Assembly (NCBI GenBank): GCA_002269645.1
Contig: NIVC01000020.1
Location: 124,001 to 188,000, forward strand
Reading direction: 5' to 3'
Length of the DNA stretch: 64,000 nucleotides
Source of the DNA: Macrostomum lignano
Lineage: Eukaryota
Below, one piece after another: positions 20,422 to 29,491 of the stretch. Both the position numbers and the translations under genes were made by a program. The notes below the pieces were generated by a model that was not told where the DNA came from, did not search any database, and saw only the letters and a list, made by a program, of their open reading frames with translations. Numbering within the stretch: the first letter of the stretch is position 1; each line of letters starts with the position of its first letter.

Positions 20422-23400
20422 TCACACAGCCTCCTCCTGCTCCAGCGGCATCGGCTCGGCCGCGGCCGGGTCGCCGACCTTGTCCTCCAGCAACGCGCCC
20501 GGCCGTCGCTGGCGCTCTTCGGCCTCCGGATCGCTGGGGCAGCCCAGGCCGAGGGTCTCAACCACCACCTGGTCGGGAGAGATGGTGCAGTTCAGGTAGC
20601 GCAGGAACACAGTCCGGATGTGCTGCACGGTGAAGGACTCCGAATGCTGCAGCATGGGCAGGTAGGCCGCCAGGAACTCCTCCACGAACTGGCACAGGCA
20701 CTGCCGCTTGCGGGTGTGCCGCTGCTCGATCGGCGCCGGAAGCTTCTTGGTGGCCAGCTCCAGGCCGTAGGCGCCGCACATCATCACGGCGATTCGCTCC
20801 TCCAGCCGGTGCTGCCGGAGAGAAGTTGGGCCGTGCCGGTTCTCGCTGCGAGACAGGAGCTTCCAGCTCCTCTAGCACTACGAGCTAAATTCCCAAAATT
20901 CACTTTCTGGACCTTCGTGTTTAAGCAACCAGGTATGTAACCTGGTATCTAATCTGGCATCCAGGTATCTAATCTGGCATCCAGGTATCTAATCTGATAT
21001 CCAGGTATCTAATCTGGCATCCAGGTATCTAATCTGATACCCAGGTATCTAATCTGGTATCCTGGAATCTAATCTGGTATCCTGGTATCTAATCTGGTAT
21101 CCTGATATCTAATCTGGTATCCTGATATCTAATCTGGTATCCTGATATCTAATCTGGTATCCTGATATCTAATCTGGCATCCAGGTATCTAATCTGATAC
21201 CCAGGTATCTAATCTGGTATCCTGGTATCTAATCTGGTATCCTGGTATCTAATCTGGTATCCTGATATCTAATCTGGTATCCTGATATCTAATCTGGTAT
21301 CCTGATATCTAATCTGGCATCCAGGTATCTAATCTGATACCCAGGTATCTAATCTGGTATCCTGGTATCTAATCTGGTATCCTGGTATCTAATCTGGTAT
21401 CCTGGTATCTAATCTGGTATCCTGATATCTAATCTGGTATCCTGATATCTAATCTGGTATCCTGATATCTAATCTGGTATCCTGATGTCTAATCTGGTAT
21501 CCAGGTATCTAATCTGGTATCCAGGTATCTAATCTGGCATCCAGGTATCTAATCTGGTATCCTGATATCTAATCTGGTATCCAGGTATCTAATTTACCAG
21601 GTATCCTAGAAACTCAATACGAATCTAGCACTGGGTACAGACGCTGGGGCAGATGAAAAAAAGACAAATCAAGGACCTAGAAGACACGGCATCATCAGCA
21701 ATGTCAAGCTACAGAGAGGATGCAGAACAGAGGATGGCGGTCTTAATTTCTGCATATTTTCATGGACTCCAGCTGCTGCCTGCACCCATGCAGTGCTTGA
21801 ATTCATGGACTCCAGCTGCTGCCTGCACCCATGCAGTGCTTGAATTCATGGACTCCAGCTGCTGCACCCATGCAGTGCTTGAATTCATGGACTCCAGCTG
21901 CTGCCTGCACCCATGCAGTGCTTGAATTCATGGACTCCAGCCGCTTCACCCATGCAGTGCTTGAATTCATGGACTCCAGCTGCTGCCTGCACCCATGCAG
22001 TGCTTGAATTCATGGACTCCAGCTGCTGCCTGCACCCATGCAGTGCTTGAATTCATGGACTCCAGCCGCTTCACCCATGCAGTGCTTGAATTCATGGACT
22101 CCAGCCGCTGCCTGCACCCATGCAGTGCTTGAATTCATGGACTCCAGCTGCAGTATGCAGTGCTGCTGGGCTTCAAGTCTTGAAAGTGCCAACAAGAGTC
22201 AATTGAAATGGCAATCTTTATCGGCACGCGTTCCATGCTTAAAATCCAAATGAAAGTCCACCAAAGTCTCCCGTGTCTGCGGAGCCCCCCGCCTTTGAGC
22301 CGAAAGGATATTTTCTGGGGAAATACCGCCGCCCTCCCCGATTTCCCTCGGGGAGCTGAGCGCGGACTGAACTCCCACCAGACTGTGCTCTCAGTGAGCT
22401 CGAGAATTTTAATCGTCAAAAGTGCGCGAGCTGAGCAGACTCACGCCTCTAAGATAGTCGGAGTCCAGAGTGTACACTGCCAGCAGGCTCTCCAGCTTCC
22501 TGTGCTCCGCTGGCCGCACTCGCAGCAGAATTTGGCGAATTTGTTCCTGCGGGCGGCGTGGTGAATGATTGAGCTGGCCGCAACCTACTCAGCTGACCGC
22601 GACCTACTCAGCTGACTGTTCCCTACTCAGTTGACTGTTCCCTACTCAGCTGGCTGTTCCCTACTCAGCTGGCTGTTCCCTACTCAGCTGGCTGTTCCCT
22701 ACTCAGCTGACCGTTCCCTACTCAGCTGACCGTTCCCTACTCAGCTGGCCGTTCCCTACTCAGCTGGCTGTTCCCTACTCAGCTGACCGTTCCCTACTCA
22801 ACTGGCTGTTCCCTACTCAGCTGACCGTTCCCTACTCAACTGGCTGTTCCCTACTCAGCTGACCGTTCCCTACTCAGCTGGCTGTTCCCTACTCAGCTAA
22901 CCGTTCCCTACTCAGCTGGCCGTTCCCTACTCAGCTGGATGCTTCCCTGCTAAACTTGGTGTTTGTCAGTGAATCATAAAAATCATTACTCACAATGCAC
23001 TCCTCAGGATTGTAGTACATCAGAAACACCTGAAAGCAGTTGGATCGCATTAAAAATAGGTTTGCAGTTTTGCACAGAGGTAAGTGCTGCAGCTTGGCTA
23101 AGAGCATTCGAACCCGCACCTGGTAGCTGTCGTCCTTCTTGAAGTGGAAGGTTGACACGATGAAGGGCCGCCTGCTGGCATACAGCAGCGCGTTTGACAG
23201 CACCGTGTTCATGAAAATCCGCCTTGACAGCTGCGGGATGGCGGAGTGAGGCTGGTGAGCTTATCCCGAACTGCAGAGCAAGGCTGGTCAGTTTATCCTG
23301 CACTGCAGTGCAAGACTGGTGAGTTTATCCCGAACTGCAGAGCAAGGCTGGTCAGTTTATCCTGCACTGCAGTGCAAGACTGGTGAGTTTATCCCGCACT

Positions 23401-29400: not shown

Positions 29401-29491
29401 GTGACTGTCCCAGCTCACCCTCCTCAATGTGGCTGAGCTCAAAGGCCCGATTGAAGAAGGCGGACTGCGAGCAGCGGAGCCGAGTGCTCAT
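20422..29491 (-). CDS. TIR-domain + TMEM268(DUF4481)-like two-TM fusion protein, 9 exons, about 658 aa
   Basis: Phase-consistent GT-AG exons: 29491-29419, 27712-26939, 26879(or 26867)-26656, 24832-24667, 24583-24483, 23230-23120, 23029-22994, 22546-22445, 20811-20422. Exon 2 is a TIR domain (YHAFVCY..DRQW...LE....RLCYDMRDF...[16 protein letters not shown]...KIVPV). Later exons give NGHLLVLAR, two hydrophobic helices, [21 protein letters not shown] and [14 protein letters not shown]...[14 protein letters not shown], which match remembered TMEM268 motifs. AATAAA at 20196-20201. Exon 1 is the least certain. Confidence 0.75.
20941..21595 (+). repeat. 20 bp intronic minisatellite (GGTATCTAATCTGGTATCCT)
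   Basis: About 32 tandem units in intron 8 of the TIR-TMEM268 gene. Confidence 0.95.
21760..22150 (+). repeat. About 43 bp intronic minisatellite (CATGGACTCCAGCTGCTGCCTGCACCCATGCAGTGCTTGAATT)
   Basis: About 9 tandem units, each containing an EcoRI site. Confidence 0.95.
22583..22940 (+). repeat. 20 bp intronic minisatellite (GTTCCCTACTCAGCTGGCT-like)
   Basis: Tandem repetition between exons 7 and 8. Confidence 0.95.
23250..23945 (+). repeat. 25-34 bp intronic minisatellite (GCTGGTGAGTTTATTGCAGTGCAAG)
   Basis: Tandem repetition; the unit shortens from left to right. Confidence 0.95.
24866..25150 (+). repeat. (GACA)n microsatellite
   Basis: Directly visible, just upstream of the exon 4 acceptor. 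Confidence 0.97.
25868..26636 (+). repeat. 28 bp G-rich intronic minisatellite (GCAGGGGAAGGTGCTGGGTCCGGGATCC)
   Basis: About 27 units; it generates the many overlapping spurious ORFs here. Confidence 0.95.
27737..28540 (+). repeat. 20 bp purine-rich intronic minisatellite (GAAGGCTGGAGATGAGAAST)
   Basis: About 40 units in intron 1. Confidence 0.95.
29062..29370 (+). repeat. 25 bp minisatellite (CTCGGGTGTGACTTCCCGCTCCCTG)
   Basis: About 12 units. Confidence 0.93.

Follow-up and report, generated by a model that had tools for sequence, protein, structure and literature searches.

A TIR domain fused to a TMEM268-like membrane module in the flatworm Macrostomum lignano

Do a TIR domain and a two-helix membrane protein resembling TMEM268, encoded one after the other on the minus strand of the Macrostomum lignano genome, belong to one gene, and what would such a protein do? 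The locus occupies positions 29491-20422 of a 64,000-nucleotide stretch of contig NIVC01000020.1 (the window). TIR proteins form a core of innate immunity in animals, plants and bacteria, and what activates a TIR domain can usually be read from its fusion partner. In the present case, the partner is a relative of TMEM268, a vertebrate protein of unknown mechanism that has lately been tied to the stability of the integrins ITGB4 and CD11b and to the survival of sepsis in mice. Our analysis demonstrates that the locus is one intact protein-coding gene of M. lignano in which a TIR and a TMEM268 module are fused, and it favors, by a modest lean, a membrane-tethered TIR adaptor as its product. Hence, the proposal of the first-pass annotation that the two parts form a single gene holds, while its description of the product as an immune or NAD-signaling receptor needs revision.

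One gene in nine exons

Nine minus-strand exons, joined explicitly, yield a single open reading frame (ORF) from 29491 to a TGA stop codon at 20422. All eight introns begin with GT and end with AG, and the phases are consistent across the nine exons. The first-pass model had the same exons except that the third was 26879-26656, giving 658 aa; residue numbers below refer to this model unless the 647-aa product is named. The exons, splice dinucleotides and phases of that model stand, and only the start of its exon 3 has to be moved. The coding parts are as follows.

29419-29491, minus strand: coding exon 1; ATG at 29491, aa 1 to 25, ends in phase 1, GTGAGC donor
26939-27712, minus strand: coding exon 2; low-complexity N-terminal region and complete TIR domain; acceptor 27712 also found in P0002
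~27332-26940, minus strand: TIR domain, ~aa 152 to 282, within exon 2
26656-26846, minus strand: coding exon 3; N-terminal cytosolic part of the TMEM268 module, as predicted, with the conserved N-G motif
24667-24832, minus strand: coding exon 4; linker and transmembrane helix 1 (~24751-24680; hydropathy peak 3.04)
24483-24583, minus strand: coding exon 5; transmembrane helix 2 (~24578-24513, from hydropathy) and a juxtamembrane RWR...KEE stretch
23120-23230, minus strand: coding exon 6; TMEM268 module with a conserved Asn; KEE|LSRRIF junction in P0038
22994-23029, minus strand: coding exon 7; 36-nt micro-exon of 12 codons with conserved Cys494
22445-22546, minus strand: coding exon 8; phase-0 introns on both sides, conserved with Tubulanus
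20422-20811, minus strand: coding exon 9 and stop codon; C-terminal domain, predicted to be cytosolic, followed by an acidic low-complexity tail
20721-20680, minus strand: signature Q-R-H-T-x4-C-L-C-Q-F-V-E, within exon 9

Evidence that the two parts are inherited as a unit comes from the nemertean Tubulanus polymorphus. The non-TIR part alone matches the Tubulanus protein LOC141899026 (P0001, 550 aa), which itself carries TIR Pfam domains. The window model and P0001 are collinear over 532 residues, which begin upstream of the TIR and reach the C terminus, with 40% identity (E = 5e-131), and an alignment of this length to a RefSeq protein excludes a chance match. The TIR core is ~55% identical between flatworm and nemertean. 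The orthologous gene lies at OZ123227.1, 20678022-20695897, where it spans ~16 kb and has 10 coding exons; its splice sites were derived from the genomic locus by requiring exact reproduction of P0001. In Tubulanus, six of the eight introns of the window gene recur with identical phase at the corresponding residue of the alignment, and the remaining two have the same phase with offsets of 1 and 5 residues; the Tubulanus gene has one extra intron. The shared introns include the one at the TIR/TMEM268 boundary, which is in phase 1 in the codon directly after the TIR (E283, aligned with D222), and a phase-1 intron in a codon of the loop between the two transmembrane (TM) helices (Y413, aligned with S339). 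Shared as well are the phase-0 intron between exons 5 and 6 (at 372|373), the phase-0 introns on both flanks of micro-exon 7, which corresponds to a 12-codon exon in Tubulanus (IYFLFYNRVECI), and the phase-0 introns flanking exon 8 (420|421 and 454|455). At the end of exon 1, Tubulanus has a phase-1 intron at most one residue away. The same architecture of TIR and module was found by profile search in a second nemertean, Lineus longissimus (LOC135487228), and in P0004, a 579-aa protein encoded by one uninterrupted ORF on a transcript-like Logan contig of 1,892 nt (SRR21676472).

Could the model nevertheless have joined two separate genes, one encoding a TIR-only protein and the other a TMEM268, or describe a decaying pseudogene? 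The gene model at this locus rests on genomic DNA and predicted models, the models of M. lignano in the databases are frameshifted and retain introns, and the window protein alone remains below the threshold for DUF4481, the Pfam family of TMEM268. On the other side, RefSeq lists the same fusion in two nemerteans, many molluscs and amphioxus; both parts are encoded by the single ORF of the short P0004 contig; and the reading frame is intact through all nine exons, with every family-invariant residue present. A two-gene artifact is excluded by the introns, including the one at the boundary, that match Tubulanus in position and phase. We have rejected both readings, and we consider them very improbable.

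Three M. lignano models in UniProt, A0A1I8FG16 (P0002), A0A1I8FIF6 (P0038) and A0A1I8FQZ1 (P0033), are frameshifted, intron-retaining predictions of the window gene or of its homeologues, and their in-frame parts match the window over long stretches, for example, in the TIR core. All three connect donor 26939 to the acceptor at 26847|26846 (...TLKH|ENIVLSDSS...) and not to 26879, as the first-pass annotation had it. The acceptor at 26846 lies 33 nt downstream of 26879 and is also in frame, has the better polypyrimidine tract (CTTTTCGCCTCCGCCTCCCAG), and removes the sole gap in the alignment to the nemertean orthologues. Because the three models, the polypyrimidine tract and the gap-free nemertean alignment all favor 26846, we rejected 26879 for this junction; the 647-aa protein is most likely the product, with the 658-aa form as an alternative. 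The exon 3-4 junction (DSF|FSAADL) is identical in the three models, the exon 5-6 junction is present in P0038 (KEE|LSRRIF), and the N terminus MSTRLRC... is common to the window model, P0002 and P0038. Two of these entries, frameshifted chimeras that run on into introns, have misleading names, 'SEFIR' and 'CKK domain-containing' for P0038 and P0033.

The gene is invisible in a track of open reading frames because minisatellite arrays sit in its long introns, as the first-pass annotation had proposed. Tandem Repeats Finder located one or two arrays in each of the five long introns, with periods of 4 to 43 nt, 9 to 71 copies and 90 to 98% matches, and it found no tandem arrays in the three short introns (83 to 92 nt). 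The intronic arrays are the following.

29058-29372: minisatellite array
27724-28545: minisatellite array
25870-26637: minisatellite array
24866-25150: (AGAC)n array
23249-23954: minisatellite array
22572-22938: minisatellite array
21759-22151: minisatellite array
20937-21593: minisatellite array

Identity of the two halves

The TIR domain is complete, as the first-pass annotation had claimed, and scores above the Pfam cutoffs of both TIR_2 (PF13676; 39.4 bits against 28, aa 156 to 268) and TIR (PF01582; 24.1 bits against 21.3). Box 1 (YHAFVCY), box 2 (RDF) and box 3 (NFFDRLL) are present, and the glutamate of the W-x3-E motif is E227 (S-W-P-E-L-E). The flatworm-nemertean clade retains both the RDF box and this glutamate, in contrast to molluscan paralogues, which have lost them. 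In place of the BB-loop Pro-Gly, the same clade has N-R-T, whereas the members from amphioxus, Mytilus (P0051) and Patella have P-G. In the PDB, the window TIR matches by sequence the TIRs of Toll-like receptor 2 (TLR2), TLR1 and MyD88. The structural comparison was done on the 40%-identical orthologue P0001. The AlphaFold2 model of P0001 has an overall predicted local distance difference test score (pLDDT) of 80.6 and of ~85 to 97 in the TIR region, and Foldseek matched this region to the TIRs of TLR1, TLR6, TLR10 and MyD88 with a template modeling score, TM(target), of 0.70 to 0.78 (E = 1e-7 to 1e-5). TLR1/2/6/10 and MyD88 are thus the best matches by both sequence and predicted structure, at 25 to 30% identity, whereas SARM1, the bacterial TIRs BtTir and TcpB, and SPARTA are far weaker (12 to 17% identity; E = 2e-3 to 1e-2). 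The TIR resembles the scaffold TIRs of the TLRs and MyD88, not enzymatic ones. The TIR of oyster TIR-STING is also among the significant sequence and structure matches.

These comparisons bear on the possibility, raised by the first-pass annotation, that the protein signals through NAD. According to this model, the TMEM268 module would oligomerize in the membrane when activated and the TIRs thereby brought together would cleave NAD+ or make a nucleotide signal, like SARM1, bacterial and plant TIRs and bacterial TIR-STING. A TIR combined with an oligomerizing or sensing module is the typical architecture of enzymatic TIR systems, and the match to oyster TIR-STING points in the same direction. 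E227 aligns with the catalytic glutamate of NADase TIRs, and the Glu is kept in the nemertean orthologues, P0004, Babylonia, Mytilus P0051, P0052 and the amphioxus members. However, 7 of the 15 family members in the alignment carry Q, R, D, I or T here, which means that catalysis has not been conserved family-wide, and TLR2, which is not enzymatic, also has a Glu aligned with E227, so the residue is not diagnostic. Moreover, enzymatic TIRs are much poorer structural matches than those of the TLRs and MyD88. NAD signaling is hence the less likely reading, and we regard an NAD+-consuming effector as unlikely.

What is the second half of the protein? The first-pass annotation had proposed homology with TMEM268 and suggested a profile search of the spliced model, and it would have given up the fusion if exons 3 to 9 lacked a DUF4481 match. 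The outcome came close to that: while the TIR passed its cutoffs, the direct match to DUF4481 (PF14800) reached 16.2 bits against a threshold of 25 (E = 0.0068) and was limited to aa 537 to 573 in exon 9, corresponding to profile positions 255 to 293 of 293. Homology became apparent with bridging sequences. A profile of the module only (A3), built from three orthologues and two exact window exons, was searched against 1.84 billion representative proteins and found 77 relatives at E ≤ 1e-3. In a Pfam scan of the 20 longest of these, nearly all had a TIR on the N-terminal side of the module, and six relatives reached the DUF4481 cutoff (P0036, 79.2 bits; P0054, 60.1; P0052, 31.7; P0051, 30.9; P0006, 26.5; P0012, 25.0). 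The same profile recovered, at E = 3e-4, P0071, a TIR-less 'transmembrane protein 268-like' protein of Branchiostoma, which is a canonical TMEM268 with DUF4481 from end to end (200 bits). In hhalign, the fusion family (A4) aligned with amphioxus TMEM268 (A5) with 99.2% probability (E = 1.3e-19) over 268 columns, pairing model residues 299 to 578 with residues 51 to 381 of 384; exon 9 is 59% identical to amphioxus TMEM268 over 22 aa. Word-indexed searches retrieved two matches with the module and four with the profile, and with amphioxus TMEM268 as the query they returned matches from Branchiostoma only and no vertebrate TMEM268. Because the family profile reaches a canonical TMEM268 and hhalign gives a probability of 99.2%, the second half is, as judged from these alignments and despite the subthreshold direct match, a divergent but genuine DUF4481/TMEM268 module.

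The module is homologous over its whole length (hhalign) to TMEM268 (C9orf91; PF14800) of vertebrates and amphioxus. Both have, in the same order, an N-G-Q motif, two adjacent TM helices, F-x-F-x-Y-Y-x4-C, and a C-terminal Q-R-H-T-x4-C-L-C-Q-F-x-E. The human motifs given in the first-pass annotation were compared with amphioxus TMEM268 and the Pfam model, and they have clear counterparts in amphioxus TMEM268 (YYNGQVITTL; two TM helices; FLHFVYYDAEPC; LGTPQAQRHTDKGLCLCQFIEKL). Human TMEM268 is encoded by a 9-exon gene, and its TM helices, aa 104 to 126 and 130 to 152, are a few residues apart (PMC6748091). In contrast to the window protein, canonical TMEM268 lacks a TIR, and it also lacks a conserved extension of ~90 residues past CLCQF (FLRYLNC...TLG), which occurs only in the nemertean clade of the window protein. 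Residues conserved in the family are N-G, a Trp in or beside each TM helix, C494, H561, C567, C569, Q570 and E573. Cys494 is conserved in 23 of 25 sequences, and H561, C567 and C569 are conserved in 27 to 28 of the 28 to 29 sequences that cover those columns. Their conservation suggests that C494, H561, C567 and C569 may form a structural Cys3His metal site.

Hydropathy analysis showed exactly two hydrophobic segments, ~6 residues apart, and no signal-like segment at the N terminus. Together with the RH...CLCQFVE motif at aa 560 to 573, this agrees with the two-TM protein described in the first pass. The module is predicted to form one compact domain (pLDDT, 89.0; predicted template modeling score, 0.84) in which beta-strands from before the TM hairpin combine with strands and helices from after it. 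Since one compact domain uses both, the parts of the module before and after the hairpin would lie on the same side of the membrane, and this side would be the cytosol because the TIR sits there. Hence, both ends of the protein probably face the cytosol, as had been suggested along with the absence of an ectodomain of leucine-rich repeats (LRRs) or Ig domains, and the tight hairpin and the single predicted domain fit this topology. There is no ectodomain, and the sole extracytosolic part is the loop of ~6 residues. With both ends in the cytosol, the protein could not itself sense extracellular ligands, and the name 'receptor' is not appropriate. The Pfam scan of the window model gave no match to LRR and none to STING or TMEM173. 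Foldseek detected no structural relative of the modeled module in the PDB (best E = 1.5), and therefore we draw no functional inference from its fold.

A candidate adaptor at the membrane

Our preferred reading, toward which the evidence tips the balance slightly, is that of a scaffold-type TIR adaptor that is tethered to the membrane and uses its TMEM268 module for docking. We consider an adaptor likelier than a receptor or an NADase because the protein has no ectodomain and its TIR is scaffold-like. From the N to the C terminus, the protein consists of a disordered region, a complete TIR of the TLR/MyD88 type and an entire divergent TMEM268 (DUF4481) module, the latter made up of a putative cytosolic beta-sheet segment with N-G, a tight two-helix membrane hairpin and a putative cytosolic alpha/beta domain ending in QRHT-x4-CLCQF-x-E. 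The module would anchor the protein in the membrane and could bind the tail that a partner membrane protein extends into the cytoplasm, much as mammalian TMEM268 docks onto integrin β4 and CD11b. The TIR would nucleate TIR-TIR assemblies with other TIR proteins and thus pass the signal on. By the 'Rosetta stone' logic of domain fusion, vertebrate TMEM268 would then be a relative that lacks a TIR yet continues to work with TIR signaling. In human TMEM268, aa 104 to 342, comprising the TM and C-terminal part, bind ITGB4 (PMC6748091), and in Tmem268 knockout mice, CD11b is lost to endolysosomal degradation and anti-infection responses are altered (PMC11169502).

The comparison with known systems is consistent with such a role. 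TRAM/TICAM-2 and MAL/TIRAP are also ectodomain-less, membrane-held TIR proteins, which bridge receptors to downstream TIR adaptors, and by analogy the window protein would most likely work like these sorting adaptors. Their TIRs are weaker structural matches, and they attach by myristoylation or a lipid-binding motif and have neither a TM hairpin nor a TMEM268 module. TLR1/2/6/10 and MyD88, the closest TIRs with recognizable boxes 1 to 3, differ from the window protein in other respects, as it lacks an LRR ectodomain, a signal peptide, a single-pass type I topology and a death domain and has N-R-T in place of the BB-loop Pro-Gly. Metazoan TIR-STING (Crassostrea gigas; PDB 6WT6/6WT7) likewise combines a cytosolic TIR at the N terminus with a protein whose vertebrate counterpart has no TIR. 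However, its partner domain is unrelated, as the module has no STING match and no PDB relative, and the likeness is an analogy only.

Several points weigh against the adaptor reading. For the docking role, the extrapolation starts from two studies in mammals, both of one laboratory. As partners for the TIR, TLRs are reportedly missing from flatworms, M. lignano among them (PMC8609888). In the clade of the window protein, N-R-T takes the place of the BB-loop Pro-Gly, which TLR TIRs typically have and which matters for the recruitment of adaptors, and with E227 at the catalytic position of NADases, the protein could still have enzymatic activity. The assignment of the module has against it the subthreshold DUF4481 score, and when hhalign was run with the clade of the window protein alone, the match fell to 94.8% probability (E = 5e-8) and shrank to 42 C-terminal columns. 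The gene model, built on genomic DNA and predictions, has its least certain exon in exon 1, as the 5' end is known from genomic sequence and predicted models.

Does the protein have an immune function at all? The module might instead serve mainly in housekeeping and stabilize or traffic adhesion receptors such as integrins, with a TIR that acts in developmental or adhesion signaling or is vestigial. In mammals, the first TMEM268 phenotypes affected adhesion, the cytoskeleton and the stability of ITGB4 (PMC6748091). Among protostomes, TLR/TIR proteins also act in development (PMC8609888), and the reported absence of TLRs from flatworms would also fit a non-immune role. However, flatworm and nemertean have well-conserved TIRs, with boxes 1 to 3 and the ~55% identical core, and the domain is kept in at least five phyla, which makes a vestigial domain unlikely, and the knockout mice show an infection phenotype. 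A mainly non-immune function therefore appears improbable to us.

A bolder version of the immune reading can be put forward tentatively, and we hold it to be rather doubtful. The protein would be an ancient bilaterian innate-immune protein whose TMEM268 module is a regulated membrane sensor or oligomerizer, perhaps through the possible Cys3His site acting as a metal or redox site, that switches the TIR on, and vertebrate TMEM268 would be its TIR-less descendant still engaged in TLR/MyD88-integrin signaling. If this were true, flatworms would gain a TLR-independent membrane TIR pathway and human TMEM268 would gain a mechanism. Independently of this version, the gene adds a membrane TIR protein to a phylum reported to lack Toll-like receptors. 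That the fusion is conserved from flatworm to amphioxus argues, in the manner of a 'Rosetta stone', for a joint action of TMEM268 and TIR signaling, and it hints that the poorly understood vertebrate protein works with TIR signaling. This link is directly testable in mammalian cells and in M. lignano, for which RNA interference is available.

Family distribution and neighborhood

A survey for the same fusion, as the first-pass annotation had suggested, found it in nemerteans, molluscs, an annelid and amphioxus. Fusions of TIR and DUF4481 are present in the bivalves Saccostrea, Mytilus and Argopecten, the gastropods Haliotis, Babylonia, Patella and Candidula, the cephalopods Octopus and Argonauta, the annelid Capitella (R7URB0), two nemerteans and M. 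lignano. The cephalochordate Branchiostoma lanceolatum also has the fusion (CAH1271012), and amphioxus has a separate TIR-less TMEM268 as well. The fusion is thus kept across at least five phyla, and its origin lies before the divergence of protostomes and deuterostomes or at a very early stage. In this spiralian and cephalochordate group, the window gene represents the flatworms, with the same architecture throughout and the same exon-intron structure as Tubulanus, and its identity to the other TIR-DUF4481 proteins (Tubulanus, Lineus, Capitella, Mytilus, Saccostrea, Haliotis, Patella and Branchiostoma) is just 18 to 40%.

Is the family new? The first-pass annotation had called the protein unrecognized, which is correct with respect to the literature only. 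Many members are already in RefSeq and UniProt, unnamed or misnamed, and every family record is called 'uncharacterized' or 'TIR domain-containing' or is mislabeled. Our literature search, outside of which lies the catalogue of invertebrate TIR-DC proteins by Gerdol et al. 2017, found no paper on a TIR-TMEM268 fusion. In the literature searched, TMEM268 and TIR are merely co-mentioned incidentally, DUF4481 is nearly absent, and the ecTIR-DC papers (again with Gerdol et al. 2017 outside the search) do not describe the architecture; bivalve members may already bear an 'ecTIR-DC' number in that catalogue (Dev Comp Immunol). What is new here is a TIR adaptor candidate with an undescribed partner module.

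Several database labels can be flagged as misannotations, in addition to the three broken M. lignano models. P0054 and P0083 (Branchiostoma lanceolatum CAH1271012 and CAH1271011) are labeled 'TLR2', a misnomer because there is no LRR ectodomain and the extracytosolic part is only the ~6-residue loop. P0009 (Octopus bimaculoides XP_052833622) is labeled 'probable serine/threonine-protein kinase pats1'.

The window is otherwise ordinary animal nuclear DNA, in which the TIR-TMEM268 gene has an ATM orthologue, a gypsy-type pol remnant, two Tudor-domain genes, Med18 and NDUFS3 as neighbors.

2889-10904, minus strand: ATM orthologue with PI3/PI4-kinase and FATC domains; C-terminal 837 aa against human ATM, E = 1.4e-173
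17321-19309, minus strand: pol fragment of a Ty3/gypsy-type long terminal repeat retrotransposon, 663 open codons, with reverse transcriptase-RNase H, integrase zinc-binding and rve core domains
33546-34574, plus strand: proline-run ORF of 343 codons
43848-44921, minus strand: Tudor-domain ORF
46418-48094, minus strand: Tudor-domain ORF with a long Lys/Glu/Ala repeat, (AEAEAKQR)n
50422-51054, minus strand: Med18
54333-55010, minus strand: NDUFS3 (30-kDa subunit of complex I)

The ATM orthologue is an uninterrupted, intronless ORF of 2,672 codons, which is unusual in animals, and lies ~9.5 kb from the eight-intron TIR-TMEM268 gene; it could be a retrogene or reflect intron loss in the lineage. 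The TIR-TMEM268 gene is followed closely, on its downstream side, by the Ty3/gypsy pol fragment. Distinct tandem arrays are strikingly dense in the window: a (GTCT/AGAC)n microsatellite occurs in at least three places (24866-25150, 37990-38370 and 39400-40000), and nearly every long intron or intergenic stretch has its own minisatellite of 19 to 54 nt, for example, at 19557-19759, 30100-30985, 41544-43320 and 53213-53715. The proline-run ORF at 33546-34574 had no Pfam match at 1e-5; its C-terminal segment resembles a WH2/verprolin-type actin-binding tail (LLEQIRQGIQLKK), and the ORF could be the last exon of a WASP/WAVE-family gene.

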